From: Octopus bimaculoides
Taxonomy: Eukaryota
Direction: 5' to 3'
Length of the DNA stretch: 40,283 nt
NCBI RefSeq assembly: GCF_001194135.2
Contig: NC_068999.1
Span: 43,029,649 to 43,069,931, forward strand
Part shown: piece by piece, positions 1,410 to 37,692 of the stretch
How positions within the stretch are numbered: position 1 is the stretch's first letter
Layout: each line of letters begins with the position of its first letter
Translations under genes and position numbers: made by a program
The notes under the pieces: generated by a model
Told to the model about the DNA's origin: nothing
The model's database searches: none
Seen by the model: only the letters and a program-made list of their open reading frames with translations

Positions 1410-1481
1410 NNNNNNNNNNNNNNNNNNNNNNNNNNNNNNNNNNNNNNNNNNNNNNNNNNNNNNNNNNNNNNNNNNNNNNNN
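1410..1481. other. assembly gap (N run)
   Basis: Seen directly. Confidence 1.
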
Positions 1482-1851: not shown

Positions 1852-2199
1852 CATGCATTTTCTGCGTGCGTGAGTGGTTATTAAAAAAAACATTTCCAGT
1901 GTTTCGGAGTGAGAGACGCATGCTTTCTTCGCCGTTTTACCTTTGGCAGGATGACAAGTTTCCTCGCCTTGTCAACAACGATATTGACAAGTTGCAGAAA
2001 GAGGTGCAGTAGGAGTTAGCAATGACAAGAGAGAGTAGCGATGCTGGGGCAAGTGTGAAAAGCGACGTCTGTAACCGTCGGCTGCCTTCGTTGAATCTAT
2101 AATGTGTTCTGCTGGCGGTGGGGAAACAGGAAAAGTTAAACAAAGGTCACGAAGACGTTAAACCCGAGTGTCTGAGAAGTGAGAAAATACAAAGAGTGA

Positions 2200-2500
2200 T
2201 ATCAAGGCGGTGGTAGAGGAGGAGGAGGAGGAGATGGCGGCGGAGGAGGAGGAGGAAAAGTCTTAGGTGGAGAAACAAGGAGGCAGGGAAGTAGAGAGGG
2301 TGGGAAAAAAGGGAGTAGAATATAGAGGAAAAGGGGGAGGAAAGAATAAGGAGGACGAAGAAGGGTGAAGGAAAGGAGGAGAAGGAAAAGAATAAGAGGA
2401 GAGGGTGAAGAATAAGAGGAGAGCGGGAAGAAGGGGAGAGGGGGAAGGGAGAGGGAGGAGGAAGAGGTGGAAGTGAGAGAGGAAGAATAGCAGCAGCAGC
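2200..2500. repeat. polypurine (GA-rich) low-complexity tract
   Basis: Seen directly. Confidence 0.9.
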
Positions 2501-2614
2501 AGGTGAGTCCGACATTGCATGAGCAAAACAGGCCCGATGGTCACGGCCGGAGTTCCTTTGGACATATAGTCGCTCTTACCAGCAAATAGAACGGACAGAC
2601 AATCAGACAGATAG

Positions 2615-2675
<61 letters not shown>

Positions 2676-2681
<6 letters not shown>

Positions 2682-3607
2682 TGAGAGATTAGCATACAGG
2701 AGTGCATCAACAGTGAAAGAAGAAACATGGCAGAATATTTGGTAAACAACAAACGAGACCTGCTACAGTATGCTGCTAGTGAAGGAATTAACAAAAATGG
2801 AGGTGAGAGTGCTCATGAATTCCGATCAAGAACAGCCAACGAGAGAGAAGTAACCCTACCTCACATGGAATTACATGGTCAGTTCCTCCATGAAACCAAC
2901 AAATTAAAAGACCAGGAAGCATCGACAAGGGTGACCAAAGACAGAAGACTGAAATCCTAATCATCGCGGCCCAGGTCCAGGCATTGAATACCAACTCAGT
3001 GAAAAGCGATATATACCACACGAGTGCGTCAGACCTCTGAAGAATGTGTGGGAAGAGGGTGGAAAGCGTGACACACATTGTTAGTGCTTGTGAAAGTCTT
3101 GCGCAAAAAGAATACAGACGTAGACACGGCAAGGTAGCTCAAAACCTCCACTGGCTACTATGCCGTAAGTTACGGGTGTTTGGTATTAACATACACCGGA
3201 AAAGGTAATGGACGAAAAAGGGAAGGCAAAAATCCTCTGGGACTTTGATTTCCAGAGAGACAAGGTGTTAGAGAACCGAAGGTCGGATATAGTAACCTTT
3301 AAGAGGGACAAACAAGAGTGCCTAATAATCGACGTAGCAGTGCCATGAGATCAAAATATCATCATTAAAGAAAGAGAAAAGGTTGATAAATATGGAGACC
3401 CGAGAACTGAGATAGCTAAGATGTGGCAGCTACGAGAATCAAACGTAAAGGTTATTCCTATTGTCATTGGAGCATTGGGTTCAATGATACCCAATCTGAA
3501 AAAAACAAACATCCGAAACCCTAGAAATACTCTACAATATACATGTACTGTAAAAGTCGGCATTACTTGGAACTGCATGCATATTGCGTCAAGTACTTTC
3601 TGCCTGA
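2676..3607 (+). mobile_element. Degenerate non-LTR retrotransposon 3' region, R4/Dong-like (RT C-terminus, CCHC knuckle, restriction-like endonuclease)
   Basis: Manual translation across frameshifts: ISIQECINSERRNMAEYL...HGQF...TEILIIAAQVQALNTN...L*RMCGKRVESVTHIVSAC (C-x2-C-x8-H-x4-C, first Cys now TGA at 3038-3040)...EYRRRHGKVAQNLHWLLC...KILWDFDFQRDKVLENRRSDIV...CLIIDVAVP*DQNIIIKEREKVDKY...VIPIVIGALG...KSALLGTACILRQVLSA*. This motif order is typical of RLE-bearing LINEs; the R4/Dong clade call is by recall. Confidence 0.9.
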
Positions 3608-3700
3608 GATCCTTGTTGTAACTTGACAAACTGCACAAACCCCCTGTAAACACAATATCTTCAATCAACAACCTCACAATATGGTATACTGTACGACGTA

Positions 3701-3845
3701 TACTATAATAATAATAATGATGATGATGATAATAATAATAACAATAACGAGAAGTGACGATGATAATTATACTAAGAGAGATGATGATGACGATGATGGC
3801 TAGATGATGACGAACAGCAATAACAACAACAACAACAATACCAGA
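3701..3845. repeat. (TAA)/(TGA)/(CAA) trinucleotide tract downstream of the R4/Dong-like element
   Basis: Seen directly. Confidence 0.9.
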
Positions 3846-4023
3846 AGCCAAAGTATTCTAAAATTAAAATGTTTATATCATTCTCAGAAAGCCATATTTC
3901 TTAATTTATCTCTTTCGAATTATAGACGGCGCCACATTTGTGAATATTTCACATCCACTCGTCTGCCTCTGACCATCTCTGACATTTACAGGATTTGAAG
4001 AGGACTGACAACAACAGCGTTCA

Positions 4024-4026
<3 letters not shown>

Positions 4027-4067
<41 letters not shown>

Positions 4068-4079
4068 TACGTACATGCA

Positions 4080-4125
<46 letters not shown>

Positions 4126-4156
4126 CATATATAGATATATATACATACACACAAAG

Positions 4157-4193
<37 letters not shown>

Positions 4194-4209
4194 CGTATGT
4201 ATGTATATA

Positions 4210-4269
<60 letters not shown>

Positions 4270-4276
4270 TATATAT
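4027..4276. repeat. compound (CA)/(CATA)/(TA)/(TG) microsatellite
   Basis: Seen directly. Confidence 0.97.
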
Positions 4277-4332
4277 AAGCTACTAAAGCTTTCATTTTTT
4301 TATTGTCTCTGTTTATTTTCTCGTGTTCCTTT

Positions 4333-4470
4333 CTGTTGAAGAGCGTAGGCTCGAAACGTAAAAGACGTTCTCACCTTCCCGAGCGTTAAACTTATACACC
4401 TGTTTGTTGTTTACACACCTGTCCTCGTCTTTTGTGTTTTTGTCTTTGTATTTTTGTAATTCCAACTATA
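4333..4470 (+). mobile_element. Probable Penelope-like element terminal fragment with hammerhead-like motif
   Basis: Seen: CTGTTGA-A-GAGC-GTAG-GCTC-GAAAC-GT-AAAAG-AC-GTT. Established: Penelope-like elements carry minimal hammerheads with a CUGANGA...GAAAC layout. The element assignment is inference. Confidence 0.45.
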
Positions 4471-4851
4471 AATATATAAAGGGTAATGACCCACCGTCGG
4501 TTACGAATGACCATGGAATTGCACCGGGAAAGTGTCCCTCTGAGGCACAAGTCCGGACGTAACCGTCCCGTCTTTTGGTATAACCAGAGCAATTGTATAT
4601 TACATACAATATGTAAAAGATTATTTTATTTTAGAAGATGTGTGACCAAAATGCCGTACAGTGGAGACGTATTCGAAACTATATAGATACGAACTTCGTA
4701 ACCATACACCTAAGCCTGCGTCCATTATTATGTATGATATAAGATACGATCGATAACCATATTCACGGACATGAACGGGCTCAACCATGGGTTTGATCAG
4801 AAAAGACCAGCCTGATGCTAATAAATATCACCGACAATGGTAGCAGTATAT

Positions 4852-4937
4852 TTCATTATCATATTGTTACATCATATATTCATTATCATATTGTTACATC
4901 GTATATTCATTATCATATAGTAACATTCATTATCATG
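4852..4937. repeat. 27-bp minisatellite (TTCATTATCATATTGTTACATCRTATA), two full and two partial units
   Basis: Seen directly. Confidence 0.9.
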
Positions 4938-4994
4938 CTATTACGTCATGTCGCAGAATCTGTAGATCGTCAGGTAGAGTCGGTTGTGTCCCAG

Positions 4995-5125
4995 CGTTGC
5001 TTAATAATCATTTTTTCTGTTCTGAGTTCCAAAGCCTCCCAAGTCCACTTTGCTCTTTTATTCTTCTGGGAGGTGGAAACAATAAAATAAACTATTAATC
5101 AAATACTGGAATCGATTAAACTTTT
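4995..5125 (+). mobile_element. SINE family A, highly degenerate copy
   Basis: Seen: GTTCTGAGTTCCAAAG...GTCCACTTTGCTCTTTTATTC...ACTGGAATCGAT, colinear with better copies. Confidence 0.5.
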
Positions 5126-5660
5126 GGCCTTCGGCCTGTACTGGAGATTGTTATCATTCTAAATTATAAGTTTTATGACTTGATAAATTCGATGCTTGTA
5201 CAATAGTCTGTAGATGTTGTTGCATACGTTGTTGCTGTTGATCTTCTTGTCGCTGCTTGCGGCAGCAACTGTTGCCGTTTTACTTTATCTCCAGGCCAGT
5301 CCTGAACAAACAAATTTATTTCCGAAAATCTTTCCAGACGTAACCGTCCCGTCTTTTGGTATAACCAGAGCAACGTTATCCTATATGCATTGGCCGTTAT
5401 TCAGAATTTACCGTATTTGATGTAAGTGGGTACTGAGGAAAACTTGAGTGCTGTTTCGAGGTGAAGAGACAGCGCAAAGAGACATATGTGAAGAGAAAAA
5501 GGTGAAGTGACATGGGAAACCATTTTTAAGAAGCAGACTGTAATGGCACATGACTCATGATCAGACGAGCAACAATACTATAGCAGAAAAGAATGCATTA
5601 AACACACACACACACACACACACACACACTGTCTCTCTCTTTCATATATACATACAACAA

Positions 5661-5716
<56 letters not shown>

Positions 5717-5775
5717 TATGAAAACCAATGACAGCAACAGATTATATTTTGTATATATATATGTAATTGATATAT

Positions 5776-5832
5776 GGCGCTCCAGCATGGCCGCAATCAA
5801 ATGGTTGAAACAAGTAAAAGGATAAAAGAATA
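5776..5832 (+). mobile_element. SINE family B, solo 3' tail
   Basis: Seen: GGCGCTCCAGCATGGCCGCAATCAAATGGTTGAAACAAGTAAAAG matches 23450-23495. Confidence 0.85.
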
Positions 5833-5850
5833 TATGTGTCTGTGTTTAAA

Positions 5851-5881
<31 letters not shown>

Positions 5882-5967
5882 CACACATATACATATAGAC
5901 ATACATATATATATACATGCACACACATACACACACACACATACATATGAAAGGATAAATATAAGTA

Positions 5968-6003
<36 letters not shown>

Positions 6004-6168
6004 TGTATATGTCTGTTTGTGTATTTGAAAGAGAGAGAGAGAAAGACAGCGAGATGGGAGAGAGAGAAAGAGAGATGCTTATAATGTTGAATGTGCTATA
6101 GTTGGATGCGCACACTTTGGACGACAATCAGCGGGCATAAGTGTGTAAGAACAACTGTATACACACAC

Positions 6169-6213
<45 letters not shown>

Positions 6214-6299
6214 CATATAGATAGATAGATATAGACATATATTTGTATGTATATATATATATATATATATATAGATAGATAGATATAGACATATATTTG

Positions 6300-6345
<46 letters not shown>

Positions 6346-6664
6346 CGTTCTTTGTGTGTGAATATGTGTGTTTGTGAAATTAGATGGAATGAAGCAATTG
6401 TTGTGTAAGTCTCCATAGTCAACGTAAATTATCTCAATCAGTCTCCTGCTAATGAAGATTGTATATAATATATTGCTTTGCAATTATCACAGGCAGTTTT
6501 AATTTACTGACGCTGTCTGAAATTTGCATTCTTTAGCATAACTAATTAACGGTATCAATCGCATAAAGTCTCTATATATGCGACACTGTGCACTATATAT
6601 ATATACATAAGCATGTATGTATATGTATATACATTGATACATAATTATACATGCATAAACACAC

Positions 6665-6697
<33 letters not shown>

Positions 6698-7552
6698 CGT
6701 ACATACTTAAATATAGACACACACACACAGACAGATGGACATAAACACATATTTTGAATTATAAATATGTGTGCGTGTGCGCGCGCGTGTGTATGTATGT
6801 GCGTTACTCTGTAAGTATGATTGTGTATATGTATATATATATATACACACACACGTGCATACACAGATTACACACACATACATACATGCATACATACATA
6901 CATGCAAACAGTATTATACAGATATACAGAACACGTAATACATTCATCCATTGTATAGCGCATATACATCGTATTAAATAATTTAAAATTATTCACCGAG
7001 TCTCTTTGAGTCTGACTGTATGTGTACGTATGTATGCATGTATGTATGTACATTTGTATGTATGTATGTGCGTTTGTATGTATGCATGTGTGTATGTGTG
7101 TATGTATGTATGTGTATAAGTATGTAAATGCAGAAACGGTCATAGATGTATATTTATATATATTTATTATATAAACCAATGTTCAATGAAATTTGCATAA
7201 AACACTTATTTCTCGGGTTAAACTTTCTTTTAATTTTTTTTTTTTACAGTTTATGGGAAACACAAAATCGAGGAGTTTGCGTAAGTGTGTAAATGCGGGT
7301 ATGTATGTACGTGTGTTTGAATATGTGTTTGTGCACGTGTGAGTATTTTAGCAAACAGGATTTTAGCGCTAAATTATTCGTCATAAAGAGAAGAGAGAAA
7401 ACGCGTATATCAAATACTATAAACGTACTTTTGTATAGAAACACACAGACTTATTCACACGCACACACACACACGTCAGTATGCGTATATGTGTATGCAT
7501 GCGTGTGTGTATACGCATGTATACATACTTATATATAAAGTATGTTTATGCT

Positions 7553-7589
<37 letters not shown>

Positions 7590-7754
7590 TTATATACATT
7601 TATACGCACATATATATATATACATACATATATTGTGCATATATATTGCTAATATATACACACTTACATTGTATATCTATGTGTAAACACACAAACACAC
7701 ATATATCCATATATTGTATATAAATATACATATAAATATATATATATATATACT

Positions 7755-7798
<44 letters not shown>

Positions 7799-7803
7799 CT
7801 TAT

Positions 7804-8385
7804 NNNNNNNNNNNNNNNNNNNNNNNNNNNNNNNNNNNNNNNNNNNNNNNNNNNNNNNNNNNNNNNNNNNNNNNNNNNNNNNNNNNNNNNNNNNNNNNNN
7901 NNNNNNNNNNNNNNNNNNNNNNNNNNNNNNNNNNNNNNNNNNNNNNNNNNNNNNNNNNNNNNNNNNNNNNNNNNNNNNNNNNNNNNNNNNNNNNNNNNNN
8001 NNNNNNNNNNNNNNNNNNNNNNNNNNNNNNNNNNNNNNNNNNNNNNNNNNNNNNNNNNNNNNNNNNNNNNNNNNNNNNNNNNNNNNNNNNNNNNNNNNNN
8101 NNNNNNNNNNNNNNNNNNNNNNNNNNNNNNNNNNNNNNNNNNNNNNNNNNNNNNNNNNNNNNNNNNNNNNNNNNNNNNNNNNNNNNNNNNNNNNNNNNNN
8201 NNNNNNNNNNNNNNNNNNNNNNNNNNNNNNNNNNNNNNNNNNNNNNNNNNNNNNNNNNNNNNNNNNNNNNNNNNNNNNNNNNNNNNNNNNNNNNNNNNNN
8301 NNNNNNNNNNNNNNNNNNNNNNNNNNNNNNNNNNNNNNNNNNNNNNNNNNNNNNNNNNNNNNNNNNNNNNNNNNNNNNNNNNNNN
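7804..8385. other. assembly gap (N run)
   Basis: Seen directly. Confidence 1.
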
Positions 8386-8451
<66 letters not shown>

Positions 8452-10481: not shown

Positions 10482-10786
10482 GAAAACGAGAAAGCAACCA
10501 TACTCTGGGATATGCCAATACACACAGATAGAGAAATTAAGGCAAATAGACCAGATATAGTTGTCAAAGATCATGAAGAAAAAAAATGCTTTCTAATTGA
10601 TGTATCAATACCAGCAGATGACAACGTTTCTCTAAAAGAAATGGAAAAACTTTCAAAATACAAAGACCTGGAAATAGAGATAACTCGAATGTGGAATCTA
10701 AAAACAGAAACAATTCCTATCATAGTAGGTGCCTTAGGTATAATAAAAAAATATTCAGACAAATACATAACAAAAACACCAGGACT
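10482..10786 (+). mobile_element. 5'-truncated R4/Dong-like LINE, uninterrupted restriction-like endonuclease domain, runs into gap
   Basis: Open frame ENEKATILWDMPIHTDREIKANRPDIVVKDHEEKKCFLIDVSIPADDNVSLKEMEKLSKYKDLEIEITRMWNLKTETIPIIVGALG, with RPD...ID...EK..KY RLE motifs. Preceded directly by (TAA)n at 10402-10472. Confidence 0.92.
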
Positions 10787-11554
10787 NNNNNNNNNNNNNN
10801 NNNNNNNNNNNNNNNNNNNNNNNNNNNNNNNNNNNNNNNNNNNNNNNNNNNNNNNNNNNNNNNNNNNNNNNNNNNNNNNNNNNNNNNNNNNNNNNNNNNN
10901 NNNNNNNNNNNNNNNNNNNNNNNNNNNNNNNNNNNNNNNNNNNNNNNNNNNNNNNNNNNNNNNNNNNNNNNNNNNNNNNNNNNNNNNNNNNNNNNNNNNN
11001 NNNNNNNNNNNNNNNNNNNNNNNNNNNNNNNNNNNNNNNNNNNNNNNNNNNNNNNNNNNNNNNNNNNNNNNNNNNNNNNNNNNNNNNNNNNNNNNNNNNN
11101 NNNNNNNNNNNNNNNNNNNNNNNNNNNNNNNNNNNNNNNNNNNNNNNNNNNNNNNNNNNNNNNNNNNNNNNNNNNNNNNNNNNNNNNNNNNNNNNNNNNN
11201 NNNNNNNNNNNNNNNNNNNNNNNNNNNNNNNNNNNNNNNNNNNNNNNNNNNNNNNNNNNNNNNNNNNNNNNNNNNNNNNNNNNNNNNNNNNNNNNNNNNN
11301 NNNNNNNNNNNNNNNNNNNNNNNNNNNNNNNNNNNNNNNNNNNNNNNNNNNNNNNNNNNNNNNNNNNNNNNNNNNNNNNNNNNNNNNNNNNNNNNNNNNN
11401 NNNNNNNNNNNNNNNNNNNNNNNNNNNNNNNNNNNNNNNNNNNNNNNNNNNNNNNNNNNNNNNNNNNNNNNNNNNNNNNNNNNNNNNNNNNNNNNNNNNN
11501 NNNNNNNNNNNNNNNNNNNNNNNNNNNNNNNNNNNNNNNNNNNNNNNNNNNNNN
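10787..11554. other. assembly gap (N run)
   Basis: Seen directly. Confidence 1.
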
Positions 11555-11663
11555 ACGGTGAAATAAACAAACAAAAAGGCTGTACAGCCAGACGTGGAGA
11601 AGAGTGTGTATATTGAACGCTGTGAAGCACGAACTGGAGAGGCGAAGAAGTGCGTGCGAAGCT

Positions 11664-11725
<62 letters not shown>

Positions 11726-12398
11726 GTAAGGGCAAAAACCATACACTGTTACGGTTATACACTCGACAATGTATATAGAAGCTACTTTACCCACAAAAAT
11801 TCTTGCCAAAACCAACTTGCACAGCGATCTGTGACCATGTTAACTCTGTTCAGTTCTGCTACTTTAATACAGATTAAATAAAGCTTTGCTTTTTTTTTTC
11901 ACTGCTTATCTTCTTGTTATTGTTTCGTTGTCTTTTGTTTGTTTGCTTGTTTCTTCTTGGTGTTGCTATTGAAATGTTAGAAAGAGAGAGAGAGAGGGAG
12001 AAAGCGAGTGAGAGGGATTGAGAAAGAATGCTGTGCAAGAGATAAGGCATCTTTTAAACACAGATCTGACGCTTCAGGCGTTCAAAAATCATCAGCTGCA
12101 ACGCCGCCATCACCAGCAGTATCACCGTATTAATACATCCGTATGAGGTTTTTCTCACACATACACACACACATGTATGTATGTATGTGTGTGTGTATAC
12201 ATTATGTATTTTATGGCAGATCTGTATGTGTGTGAGGGGTTGTTGTATACACATATGTTACATAAAAGACACAGATATATCAATATGTAGATATAGAAAT
12301 ATATAATCTATACGCATGCGCCGACATATATTTGCATACAAGTTTGTGTGAAAGTGTCTGTATAAAAATACATAAGCATATATAATACATGCATGTAT

Positions 12399-12442
<44 letters not shown>

Positions 12443-12567
12443 TGAAACTACACACATATGTTCATGCGTACGTACATGTGTGTGTGTGTATACGTATACA
12501 TATTAATACACACATATACCCACGCATGCATATATATATATATATATATATATACATGCACACATAG

Positions 12568-12804
12568 NNNNNNNNNNNNNNNNNNNNNNNNNNNNNNNNN
12601 NNNNNNNNNNNNNNNNNNNNNNNNNNNNNNNNNNNNNNNNNNNNNNNNNNNNNNNNNNNNNNNNNNNNNNNNNNNNNNNNNNNNNNNNNNNNNNNNNNNN
12701 NNNNNNNNNNNNNNNNNNNNNNNNNNNNNNNNNNNNNNNNNNNNNNNNNNNNNNNNNNNNNNNNNNNNNNNNNNNNNNNNNNNNNNNNNNNNNNNNNNNN
12801 NNNN
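12568..12804. other. assembly gap (N run)
   Basis: Seen directly. Confidence 1.
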
Positions 12805-13056
12805 GATATATATACACACATACTCATTTATCTCTCCCTCCACACATACACACACACTCACACACAAATGTATATGCACGTACACACCGTTACATAATAC
12901 ATGCGTATACACATATACATGCATATATACACACATATACCCATTTATCTCTCTCCACACACGCACACAAACATGTATACGTACATACCGTTACATACAT
13001 ACATACTTACATACATACATCCATACATACATACACACATACATACATACACACCG

Positions 13057-13101
<45 letters not shown>

Positions 13102-13608
13102 TATCCGTGTGCTTATACCGACGAGCACAAGAGATTGCACGCGAACCTCCATAGTTGTTCATCCGCACTTTTGTCGCTTTATTTTTATGCTGGGAACTCT
13201 TCAAGAGAATCTTTTAGCAACGTTTTGTTATAGAATGTGTCTTCGCTAATGTTGTAGCACCACTCAAACATACCCGGGGTATTGTTGAGATAAGCCACAG
13301 CAGCATACATCCAACATGAACCGTAATCTTCAACCCTAAATTCATGGTTTATCACCAACCCATCTGCTCGCCTTTTTATACCTGACTATTATTATTATTA
13401 TTATTATTATTGCTGTTGTTGTGACTGTTGTTAGTGGTGGTGGAATTATTGTTCATGTTGTTGTTGCTGGTGTACAAAGTATCCTTTCTTTTCAAGGCTC
13501 CGATTTTAATCTTAGTTCACTCACTAAAAGATGCCCTTTTTTTTTTATTATTTCTTTTTTTTTTCTTTGCTGTTTTCGTCGTCTTTGTTTCTTTTTTTCC
13601 CCCTTCTT

Positions 13609-17334: not shown

Positions 17335-17971
17335 TTTTGGGGAGCCGAGTTTGCCAACATAATTCCAAATAAGATCCAGTGGAGGCTAAGGTCGTCTTAA
17401 ACAGGCGGGTCAGGTATTCCTCGTCGACGCCCGGGTTCGGCCCGAGATCGTCGTCGTACCTTCCCTCCACTAATCCACTATAGAATGCGTTAGTTGTGAT
17501 GCAGTCGCTCAAGGTTGACCCGGGATGTTGAGTCCTCCTTTTAACGGGTGTTGGCAGCAAACGGATCGCCTAACCATCGGAACGCTTCCTTTCCACAAGA
17601 AGCGGAAGAGGATACGCTCCAGCTTGGTGATGGTAGGGTCGGGACAAGGAACGACGGTTAGGCGGTAGTAGATGACGGACGCGATGTACGTGTTCGCCAC
17701 CTCCGCCCGACCTTTTAGGGACAGCTTCCTCTCGGCCCATTGCCGGGCTAGAGTGGCCACCCGTCTCGTTATCTCGTCCCAGTTCTTCTCCGTTTGGAGG
17801 TCCGGACCAAACCAGACCCCGAGCAACTCAACCGGACCGTCAGTCCAACGTCCCTCGACGGAGGCGCTGCTTGACGGCATGGGCTTGCTTCTCCAGGTGC
17901 CGAGCCGCAAGCCCACTGACTTATCCCGGTTGATTTTTGCTCCCGTTACCGTTTCGTAGTCTTTCAGTGTC
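17335..17971 (-). mobile_element. L1/Tx1-like LINE ORF2 fragment (RT C-terminal/thumb region) with internal deletion
   Basis: Translation TLKDYETVTGAKINRDKSVGLRLG...VELLGVWFG...W.ERKLSLKGRAEVANTYIASVIYY...ILFRFLWKG...RRSVCCQHPLKGGLNIP. The GAKIN..KS, LG, LSLKGR and GGL..P motifs are established L1/Tx1 ORF2 features. GC-rich relative to the flanks. Confidence 0.9.
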
Positions 17972-19108: not shown

Positions 19109-19322
19109 NNNNNNNNNNNNNNNNNNNNNNNNNNNNNNNNNNNNNNNNNNNNNNNNNNNNNNNNNNNNNNNNNNNNNNNNNNNNNNNNNNNNNNNNNNNN
19201 NNNNNNNNNNNNNNNNNNNNNNNNNNNNNNNNNNNNNNNNNNNNNNNNNNNNNNNNNNNNNNNNNNNNNNNNNNNNNNNNNNNNNNNNNNNNNNNNNNNN
19301 NNNNNNNNNNNNNNNNNNNNNN
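19109..19322. other. assembly gap (N run)
   Basis: Seen directly. Confidence 1.
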
Positions 19323-21289: not shown

Positions 21290-21848
21290 NNNNNNNNNNN
21301 NNNNNNNNNNNNNNNNNNNNNNNNNNNNNNNNNNNNNNNNNNNNNNNNNNNNNNNNNNNNNNNNNNNNNNNNNNNNNNNNNNNNNNNNNNNNNNNNNNNN
21401 NNNNNNNNNNNNNNNNNNNNNNNNNNNNNNNNNNNNNNNNNNNNNNNNNNNNNNNNNNNNNNNNNNNNNNNNNNNNNNNNNNNNNNNNNNNNNNNNNNNN
21501 NNNNNNNNNNNNNNNNNNNNNNNNNNNNNNNNNNNNNNNNNNNNNNNNNNNNNNNNNNNNNNNNNNNNNNNNNNNNNNNNNNNNNNNNNNNNNNNNNNNN
21601 NNNNNNNNNNNNNNNNNNNNNNNNNNNNNNNNNNNNNNNNNNNNNNNNNNNNNNNNNNNNNNNNNNNNNNNNNNNNNNNNNNNNNNNNNNNNNNNNNNNN
21701 NNNNNNNNNNNNNNNNNNNNNNNNNNNNNNNNNNNNNNNNNNNNNNNNNNNNNNNNNNNNNNNNNNNNNNNNNNNNNNNNNNNNNNNNNNNNNNNNNNNN
21801 NNNNNNNNNNNNNNNNNNNNNNNNNNNNNNNNNNNNNNNNNNNNNNNN
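21290..21848. other. assembly gap (N run)
   Basis: Seen directly. Confidence 1.
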
Positions 21849-25951: not shown

Positions 25952-26326
25952 GAGCACGTACATACGTGTATGTTTTAATGTACCTTGTTTTATTTTCCGT
26001 GTTATTCCGTTTAACATATTCACAACTGATAGATAGATAGATAGATAGATGGAGAGATAGATAGATAGATGGAGAGATAGATAGATGGAGAGATAGATAG
26101 ATACGCGCATACATAAATACATACATATTATAAACGCTTGATTGTGGAGGGATACGTGCATGCACGGCCTTCAACGTATGCCTCGGGGAACATGCAGGGA
26201 GAGGCCGAAGACAAAAACAAAACAAAAAAAAAACAAAAACGTGGGGTTGGTGGCTAGGACAACGATGGAAGAAACGATAAAGCGAGAGGGTGTCGAACGT
26301 TCGAACCGACTTAAGAGTTAACGACG

Positions 26327-27366: not shown

Positions 27367-27489
27367 TTATTCTCAAACAAGAATATAAATATTACTGATA
27401 GTGACTTCGAAGTTTCGGCCAGTCCAACGAAGGCCGAACTGGCTGAAACGTGGACGTCCCCGCTCAGTAACATTCTTGCTTGAGAATAA
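27367..27489. repeat. ~123-bp imperfect inverted repeat (fold-back element)
   Basis: Seen: 27367-27384 vs 27472-27489 (17/18), 27392-27398 vs 27464-27470 (7/7), GAC/GTC, 27412-27423 vs 27438-27449 (11/12), with a 14-nt spacer. Confidence 0.9.
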
Positions 27490-27517
27490 TAAACGAACAA
27501 ACATATATGCATAGTTG

Positions 27518-27602
27518 GCCTCGGTAGCGCAGTAGGCAGCGCGTCAGTCTCATAATCAAAAATGAAATCTGAAGGTCGTGAGTTCGATCCTCACCTGGGG
27601 CA
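27518..27602 (+). tRNA. tRNA-Met(CAT): Elongator tRNA-Met (anticodon CAT, 27551-27553) with 12-nt intron at 27555-27566
   Basis: Seen: acceptor GCCTCGG/CTGGGGC plus discriminator A; D-arm GCGC-AGTAGGCA-GCGC; anticodon stem TCAGT/TCTGA; loop CT-CAT-A|A; variable AGGTC; T-arm GTGAG-TTCGATC-CTCAC; A-box TAGCGCAGTAGG and B-box GAGTTCGATCC. The spliced sequence closely matches the metazoan elongator tRNA-Met as I recall it. G1:C72 and T54 exclude the initiator. Confidence 0.95.
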
Positions 27603-27608
27603 TATTTC

Positions 27609-27613
27609 TTTTT
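27609..27613 (+). terminator. RNA polymerase III terminator (T5)
   Basis: Seen: TTTTT starting 7 nt after the discriminator base. Established: Pol III terminates at runs of four or more T. Confidence 0.8.
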
Positions 27614-27617
27614 AACT

Positions 27618-27669
27618 GGCGGCGCCCCAGCAGGGCTGCAACCTCAAGACTGAAACATATAAAAGAATA
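27618..27669 (+). mobile_element. SINE family B, solo 3' tail
   Basis: Seen: GGCGGCGCCCCAGCAGGGCTGCAACCTCAAGACTGAAACATATAAAAGAATA. Confidence 0.75.
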
Positions 27670-27693
27670 TATATATGTACATATATGTATATA

Positions 27694-27758
<65 letters not shown>

Positions 27759-28004
27759 GTGTATATATATGTATATATATAACTTGGTATGATAAGTGCA
27801 ATGCAGGAAGATCTCGGTCCTTAAGTAATTTGTATGATTTACAACCGAAAAATAAATTTGTGGATAAATAGACAGATATAAAGAGAGACAGTCACAGATT
27901 GATGAAAAGTAATATTTTATCCACCGTTATGTGTCTGTCTTCTTGGAAGTGTCCCCTTTTTGTACCTGGAACCATAAAACATACCCATGCACACGCATTC
28001 ATGC

Positions 28005-37477: not shown

Positions 37478-37620
37478 GCGGGGACACTGCTAAAGAAAGA
37501 TCCGAACAAGAGGAACTCACAGATAACTTCAGGTCTATCACTCTGTTCAACGCAGACTTGAAGATTTTGGCCAAGGTATTAGCCGAGAGGTTGACCATTG
37601 TCATCGAGAAACTGATCGAT
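37478..37620 (+). mobile_element. L1/Tx1-like LINE RT N-terminal fragment, frameshifted
   Basis: Translation TLLKKDPNK/...DNFRSITLFNADLKILAKVLAERLTIVIEKLI matches the established non-LTR RT motif (N[YF]RPI.LLN.D.KILAK.LA.RL). Confidence 0.88.
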
Positions 37621-37692
37621 GTGTGTGATTCAGTGAGATCGATTTGATTTTTCTTTGAGTTATAATATACAGCGAAATGAAGAAATAAACAG

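Follow-up and report, generated by a model that had tools for sequence, protein, structure and literature searches.

The analyzed DNA, a stretch of 40,283 nucleotides hereafter referred to as the window, carries on its forward strand an elongator tRNA-Met (Met-e) gene with the anticodon CAT and an intron in the anticodon loop. The gene reads GCCTCGGTAGCGCAGTAGGCAGCGCGTCAGTCTCATA (5' exon), ATCAAAAATGAA (intron), and ATCTGAAGGTCGTGAGTTCGATCCTCACCTGGGGCA (3' exon). Its parts and the neighboring signals are the following:

27485..27493, + strand: AT-rich block AATAATAAA at -33 to -25, a possible TATA-like element
27518-27602, + strand: intron-bearing elongator tRNA-Met(CAT) gene
27518..27554, + strand: 5' exon, tRNA positions 1-37 (G1 = 27518), with the sequence found most often among the 5' exons of the animal-type class described below
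27525-27536, + strand: A box TAGCGCAGTAGG, intact, inside the 5' exon
27551-27553, + strand: anticodon CAT, followed by A37 (27554)
27555..27566, + strand: 12-nt intron ATCAAAAATGAA between tRNA positions 37 and 38, with an A-U-C start and G27564 at intron position -3
27567..27602, + strand: 3' exon, tRNA positions 38-72 (A38 = 27567) and the discriminator base A73
27582-27590, + strand: B box GTTCGATCC, intact, inside the 3' exon
27609..27613, + strand: T5 run, beginning 7 nt past the discriminator base and read as the RNA polymerase III terminator

The Rfam tRNA family (RF00005) matched this gene over the full model (1-71) with 52.8 bits (gathering score 29, E=1e-08), and this was the sole Rfam family match across the 40-kb window. 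The model puts a 14-nt insertion into the anticodon loop. ARAGORN, run in the bacterial mode, returned the same coordinates and left the anticodon unnamed because of the insert; removal of 27555-27566 restores CTCATAA. The G1:C72 pair together with T54 identifies an elongator, and initiator identity was ruled out by the same two features. The gene has the type 2 architecture of RNA polymerase III genes, with an A box, a B box, and a T run of at least four residues; the T5 run is preceded by TTT at 27605-27607. The exons are equal to the majority animal-type Met-e exon save for one wobble-compatible change, and the G6·U67 wobble pair of the window gene is also present in one gene of a metagenome locus (L014). 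No second or intronless Met-CAT copy was found within the 40-kb window. The window gene is a real, intact-looking tRNA-Met gene split by a 12-base intron.

The structural part of the first-pass annotation of this DNA is borne out. It had described an elongator tRNA-Met(CAT) gene with an intact cloverleaf, A and B boxes, and a T5 terminator, in agreement with the Rfam score and with our reading of the sequence. It had also placed the insert exactly between positions 37 and 38, where the full-length model match with its insertion in the anticodon loop places it as well. The AATC direct repeat that it had noticed around the insert is likewise present, at 27554-27557 and at 27566-27569.

Ordinary protein-coding genes were not recognized in the window, and an exact ORF look-up gave no match. 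The only ORFs found there are transposon-like, without Pfam match:

10512-10786, + strand: 91-residue transposon ORF with relatives in Penaeus monodon, Lingula anatina, and Montipora capricornis (62-65% identity)
17509-17916, - strand: reverse-transcriptase-like fragment, whose relatives carry Pfam RVT_1
about 37500-37647, + strand: retroelement ORF fragment

None of these three fragments represents an intact retroelement. The closest homologue of the reverse-transcriptase-like fragment (77% identity) is on a 722-bp contig of GCA_024449705.1. The relatives of the 91-residue ORF span shrimp, brachiopod, and coral at 62-65% identity and are therefore not taxon-diagnostic; its further best matches come from tiny ENA contigs. 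This content would fit a large invertebrate animal genome. Microsatellites are extremely dense in the window; examples besides the numerous arrays of (AC)n, (AG)n, and (TATC)n are (GATA)19 at 26028-26103 and (AT)57 within 27667-27781, the latter beginning 65 bp past the tRNA gene. At 60-115 bp upstream of the gene (27403-27458), there is an imperfect inverted repeat of 21 nt, with arms that are 81% complementary and separated by a spacer of 14 nt.

The assembly is a draft with six gaps in the window (1410-1481, 7804-8385, 10787-11554, 12568-12804, 19109-19322, and 21290-21848). Such richness in repeats, microsatellites, and gaps speaks for a tRNA-derived SINE, some other repeat, or an assembly artefact as the source of the split gene, but this explanation is extremely improbable. 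The 600-700 bp on either side of the gene are unique when compared with the window and with all loci fetched, which places the gene outside any repeat family in the data at hand. Moreover, the terminator follows directly after the gene, the cloverleaf scores like those of other intron-bearing Met-e genes (52-57 bits), and no N gap lies within 5 kb. Membership in a SINE or tRNA pseudogene family was rejected on the same grounds, that is, unique flanks, an intact cloverleaf, and an adjacent terminator.

Metagenomes were scanned with the pattern GTCAGTCTCATA-N{5,35}-TCTGAAGGTC for Met-e anticodon arms that contain 4-34 additional bases. Intron-bearing Met-CAT genes were found on at least 120 metagenome contigs, and 130 genes with complete flanks, the window gene included, were extracted among the matches listed. 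Animal-type exons were defined by the D arm AGCGCAGTAGG[C/T]AGCGC and the T arm GTGAGTTCGATCCTCAC. Among the matches listed, 73 contigs yielded 81 genes with such exons, which together with the window make 82 genes from 74 sources; the exons are identical or nearly identical to those of the window gene. Presumably, they are also identical or nearly so to the exons of human Met-e. Other exon types among the matches listed were fungal-like, red-alga-like, and others. In total, 66 distinct introns of 12-24 nt were found in the 82 animal-type genes listed, window included. Their conserved positions, with positive numbers counted from the 5' end and negative ones from the 3' end of the intron, and the associated T run are as follows (all among the matches listed):

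Intron position +1: A in 66/66 distinct animal-type introns
Intron position +2: U in 65/66 distinct animal-type introns
Intron position +3: C in 65/66 distinct animal-type introns
Intron position -5: G in 48/66 distinct animal-type introns
Intron position -4: A in 58/66 distinct animal-type introns, G in 6 more
Intron position -3: G in 65/66 distinct animal-type introns
Downstream of the gene: a run of at least four T in 81/82 animal-type genes

The A-U-C start, found in 65 of the 66 animal-type introns listed, was retained in 72 of 74 after more loci had been added. For all exon types together, and after the addition of loci L125-L130, G at -3 was found in 102 of the 103 distinct introns listed; the share of G in the interiors of distinct introns of all exon types listed is only 13%. 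On this pattern of conservation, G at -3 is taken as the signature of the proximal anticodon-intron pair. In the same scan, the fungal-like and red-alga-like Met-CAT introns keep G at -3 and lack the A-U-C start, which thus appears to be specific to the animal-type class. The class is defined here by animal-type exons and by an intron of 12-24 nt that has an A-U-C start and G as the third base from its 3' end. The window intron has both intron marks, ATC at 27555-27557 and G27564 at -3. Judging from these shared features, the window gene is likely part of a widespread, inherited Met-e class in non-model animals.

This distribution bears directly on the origin of the window intron. The first-pass annotation had proposed a lineage-specific gain, and such a recent gain is now unlikely: introns of the same type occur in at least 81 animal-type genes on at least 73 environmental contigs, as well as in Oculina patagonica and at the syntenic locus of four further assemblies (see below). 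Its caveat that the AATC repeat could mark a small, disabling insertion loses most of its force as well. Since A-U-C opens 65 of the 66 introns listed, the repeat is a characteristic class feature rather than a scar left by an insertion. The direct repeat around the insert, and the A-rich composition that the insert shares with the surrounding DNA, would be expected if an intronless Met-e gene had acquired a private small insertion or duplication whose likeness to an intron is coincidental. Nevertheless, that coincidence is very improbable, because the insert lies exactly at 37/38, begins with A-U-C as do 65 of 66 introns listed, has G at -3 as do 102 of 103, and carries a complement of the anticodon. 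In addition, no intronless Met-e gene was found in the related loci, all of which had been selected for the intron. A private insertion that disables the gene is accordingly unlikely. The first-pass annotation had also allowed that Met introns might prove common across animals, in which case the window intron would not be novel; in substance, the scan and the coral loci have given this result.

The sources of the related genes were assigned, outside the coral contigs, by exon similarity and by transposon and animal-type genes on the contigs, not by named genomes. Thus, among the animal-type contigs outside the coral subgroup, there are some with reverse-transcriptase genes, with an exon for a C2H2 zinc finger, or with a glycine-rich domain of the ALK/LTK type. 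Presumably, several JGI sample series in the scan come from holobionts of gutless worms and corals. In 26 related loci, Rfam yielded tRNAs only and no taxon-informative family. The class genes score 52-57 bits with Rfam, a range that includes the 52.8 bits of the window gene. Several metagenome contigs carry two or three intron-bearing Met-e copies; intronless Met-e genes were found in 0 of 129 loci, which is weak evidence since all these loci were picked for the presence of the intron. Among the animal-type genes listed, 12 acceptor-stem variants were found, and the subgroups also differ in intron family. Within the 45 nt examined upstream, an A/T run of at least 7 nt at about -45 to -11 was present in 51 of 95 class genes among the matches listed.

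No intron-bearing Met-CAT genes were matched in the scan of viral contigs. The scan of bacterial and archaeal genomes gave one match, at 786-871 on the reverse strand of FXLX01000321.1 (L130; coverage 0.55), which is in a SUP05 symbiont bin and is filed under "uncultured SUP05 cluster bacterium." This gene has window-type exons and is the same as the gene of locus L049 in its intron, its exons as extracted, and the match of the downstream T run. The contig is probably host contamination in the symbiont bin. A further contig of only 3 kb (L079, 36-2983) contains nine tRNA genes, one of them an intron-bearing Met-e gene, and is a dense tRNA cluster from a marine animal.

A coral subgroup of the class is characterized by the acceptor stem GCCTCGT/ACGGGGC and by introns of the form AUCUGA...AGAN. 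One of its contigs, L115, also carries a 599-codon ankyrin-repeat ORF, for which the best named homologues were found in Oculina patagonica (75% identity over the full length) and Pocillopora verrucosa. In the O. patagonica assembly GCA_052425735.1, the ankyrin orthologue is followed 1.5 kb downstream by an intron-bearing Met-CAT gene. Orthologues of the L115 ankyrin ORF were found in three further assemblies (58, 52, and 47% identity), each with an intron-bearing Met-CAT gene 0.6-4.6 kb downstream. No tRNA was found within 10 kb of the ankyrin homologue in Pocillopora verrucosa. The coral Met-e genes are the following:

L115: 2870-2956
L125 (O. patagonica): 13151-13237
L127, L128, and L129: one gene in each of the three further assemblies

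In the alignment of these five loci, every exon position is invariant. The introns keep ATCTG at the 5' end and AGA-N at the 3' end around a variable middle, and the flanks are unalignable save for the T run and a few upstream positions; AT-rich blocks are present upstream here too. Because the exons are invariant, the intron ends kept, and the flanks diverged, the intron appears to have stayed at a single locus while its carriers diverged for a long time. Such retention suggests selection on the presence of the intron and on its ends. The Rfam model places the insertion of the coral genes in the variable loop, an effect of the duplicated AUCUGA in their introns; such a placement is impossible for the window gene, and this reading was rejected. 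The AUCUG(A) with which the coral introns begin copies the anticodon stem's 3' strand, and some of these introns contain UCAGA and can form a hairpin of their own. These sequences hint at an origin of the coral intron by duplication of the anticodon arm, or at a precursor with an alternative, mature-like stem.

Like the window gene, the coral Met-e genes (L125 of O. patagonica, L115, and L127-L129) have animal-type exons, an intron at 37/38 with A-U-C start and G at -3, and a downstream T run. Their introns of 13-14 nt are close in length to the 12 nt of the window intron. They differ from the window gene in the acceptor-stem pair 7:66 (T-A in corals, G-C in the window), in the AUCUG(A) start, and in keeping A at -4.

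The window intron is the shortest among the class introns listed, and it alone among the 66 animal-type introns listed has U at -4 (T27563). It also lacks the common GAG at -5 to -3. A purine at -4, able to pair with U33, was found in 64 of the 66 animal-type introns listed and is lacking in the window intron. The first-pass annotation had stated correctly that an anticodon-intron pair between C32 and G(-3) can form. Both C32 and G27564 are present, with A-2, A-1, and A38 as the bulge, although the pair is predicted to be unfavorable when alone, at +2.9 kcal/mol relative to the open loop in the full cloverleaf. The complementarity of intron ATGA (27562-27565) to the anticodon-loop TCAT (positions 33-36), pointed out in the same annotation, forms the helix of the predicted minimum-free-energy fold. 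This helix, between U33-U36 and intron positions -2 to -5 (UCAU/AUGA), is predicted at -3.3 kcal/mol relative to the open loop. The canonical 3-bp helix of typical class members is predicted at about -1.2 kcal/mol on the same scale. Since the minimum-free-energy folds of class anticodon arms have the canonical register in only 32 of 71 cases and the helices are marginal, folding is uninformative for the class, and sequence conservation was relied on instead.

In Drosophila, the proximal pair is always C-G, lies beside a 3-nt bulge, and is located 6 nt from the exon end (PMC6614914). The window gene has all three features at the level of sequence. In Drosophila reporters, the proximal pair was necessary and insufficient, and one adjacent pair partly rescued splicing (PMC6614914). 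Because no pair adjoins C32:G(-3) in the window copy, these reporter data indicate that it may be spliced less efficiently than the rest of the class. The window gene could then be a decaying class member, a young pseudogene whose intron has been shortened or mutated (GAG to AUG at -5 to -3) and is spliced poorly or wrongly. The shortest intron and the sole U at -4 among those listed, the unfavorable canonical helix, and the insufficiency of the proximal pair alone in fly reporters speak for such decay. We nevertheless consider it unlikely. The exons have no disabling change, the boxes and the terminator are intact, and G at -3 is retained. Furthermore, the 3' end of the window intron (AUGAA before exonic A) is also found in L058, an unrelated Met-CAT gene with its own terminator, as AAUGAA before exonic A.

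A further point against decay lies in the register of the shifted helix. Its natural cuts would fall between +1 and +2 and between 38 and 39, and the mature sequence obtained from them is the same as from the canonical cuts. The reason is that the A-U-C of the intron equals tRNA positions 38-40, so that a displacement of the cuts by one nucleotide leaves the mature tRNA unchanged. More generally, splice sites shifted by 1-3 nt would yield the same mature tRNA owing to this copy of 38-40. An inherited, intron-bearing Met-e gene that is probably functional is the explanation we favor, as the likely one.

For such a gene, the following pathway is proposed. The internal A and B boxes would recruit TFIIIC and RNA polymerase III, transcription would stop at the T5 run, and the ends of the pre-tRNA would be processed after transcription. 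The TSEN endonuclease, measuring along the mature domain and guided also by the proximal pair C32:G(-3), would cut between 37 and +1 and between -1 and 38; the cut register displaced by one nucleotide (+1) would suit the more stable UCAU/AUGA helix of the window copy. An RtcB-type ligase would join the exons, as in other animals, to give a Met-e tRNA of 73 nt before CCA addition. The freed 12-nt intron would be degraded or circularized. No account of a circular tRNA intron of 12 nt was found in the literature consulted; small tRNA introns were excluded by size from most RNA-seq libraries of the study in which tricRNAs were discovered (PMC4536317).

At the level of sequence, the window gene shares features with the TSEN-spliced Tyr(GTA), Ile(TAT), and Leu(CAA) introns, which also lie at 37/38 and have a C-G proximal pair, a 3-nt bulge at the 3' splice site, and C32 located 6 nt from the exon end (PMC6614914). 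The window gene differs from them in its isoacceptor. Pairs next to the proximal pair are possible in most Met-e class members and not in the window copy. No description of a 5'-AUC rule for the Tyr, Ile, and Leu introns was found in the literature consulted. The architecture of the window gene is that of an ordinary eukaryotic tRNA intron, a fairly ordinary inherited feature.

A survey of 576 eukaryotic genomes in GtRNAdb found Met-CAU introns conserved in plants and fungi and listed Tyr, Ile-UAU, Leu-CAA, and Arg-UCU introns for animals (PMC12168002). The view of the first-pass annotation that a Met-CAU intron is not the animal pattern is consistent with this survey (PMC12168002). The plant and fungal tRNA-Met(CAU) genes share a Met-CAU intron with the window gene but differ from it in exon sequences. 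Met-e introns of land plants are similarly short. No explicit description of Met-CAT introns in molluscs, invertebrates, or cnidarians was found in the literature consulted. Nonetheless, tRNAscan-SE run on any coral genome would report the Met-e intron class. The animal-type Met-e intron (5'-AUC, G at -3, usually after GA) is abundant in marine animal DNA, and the contrast between this class and the plant and fungal picture given by the survey (PMC12168002) may be of interest to tRNA biologists. For the window locus itself, the main outcome is a correction: the gene has the look of a normal, inherited member of the class and not of a fresh gain.

The Met-e intron may be old in animals, common to the lineage of the window and to cnidarians at the least, selected for a step on the precursor, and lost in vertebrates, insects, and nematodes. 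We regard this scenario as tentative and more doubtful than probable. If it is true, the copy of positions 38-40 in A-U-C (38-43 in corals) would mean that the precursor still shows a mature-like anticodon loop, which by analogy could matter for loop modifications, for instance the methylation of C34 at the wobble position. The correct tRNA would also result from cuts that are 1-3 nt out of place, a tolerance of register that the window copy would illustrate in nature through its shifted 4-bp helix. The conserved ends, together with coral synteny at neighbor-protein identities down to 47%, suggest selection on the intron itself. Speculatively, and again by analogy, AUC, which is conserved, and GAG, which is frequent, may have a role in a step on the precursor.

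Two known systems provide the analogy. In a passage of PMC6601510 citing Joardar et al. (2011), the wobble C34 in Haloferax volcanii is described as being methylated on the intron-containing pre-tRNA-Met by a box C/D guide. This elongator pre-tRNA-Met resembles that of the window in isoacceptor and in having an intron in the anticodon loop, whereas its intron is an archaeal bulge-helix-bulge substrate. In human Met-e, the wobble C34 is 2'-O-methylated with the SNORD97/SCARNA97 guide, whose antisense element pairs with the anticodon stem-loop (PMC6601510). Met-e would be a second animal tRNA, beside Tyr, Ile, and Leu, in which intron-dependent modification can be sought.

Two minor observations concern other exon types found in the scan. 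The contig L070 carries a Met-e gene of a related exon type with the T arm GAGCC. Its almost intron-free ORF (2153-8400) is, by eye, presumably PRP8, and its other ORF (10749-13100) we take, also by eye, to resemble an ankyrin-repeat, patatin-type phospholipase with asparagine runs. The source of this contig is a compact, AT-rich eukaryote. Additionally, Met-CAT genes with a 5' exon beginning GTCCTTGTAGCTCAG have a second insertion in the T arm, of the form GTGGGTTCGAG-[about 12 nt]-CCACCCCACCGGGGGCA; this group comprises L004, L012, L037, L055, L068, L087, L091, L096, L099, L111, and L112. As read from their sequences, these genes would be tRNA genes with two introns each, a type that has been reported in red algae.
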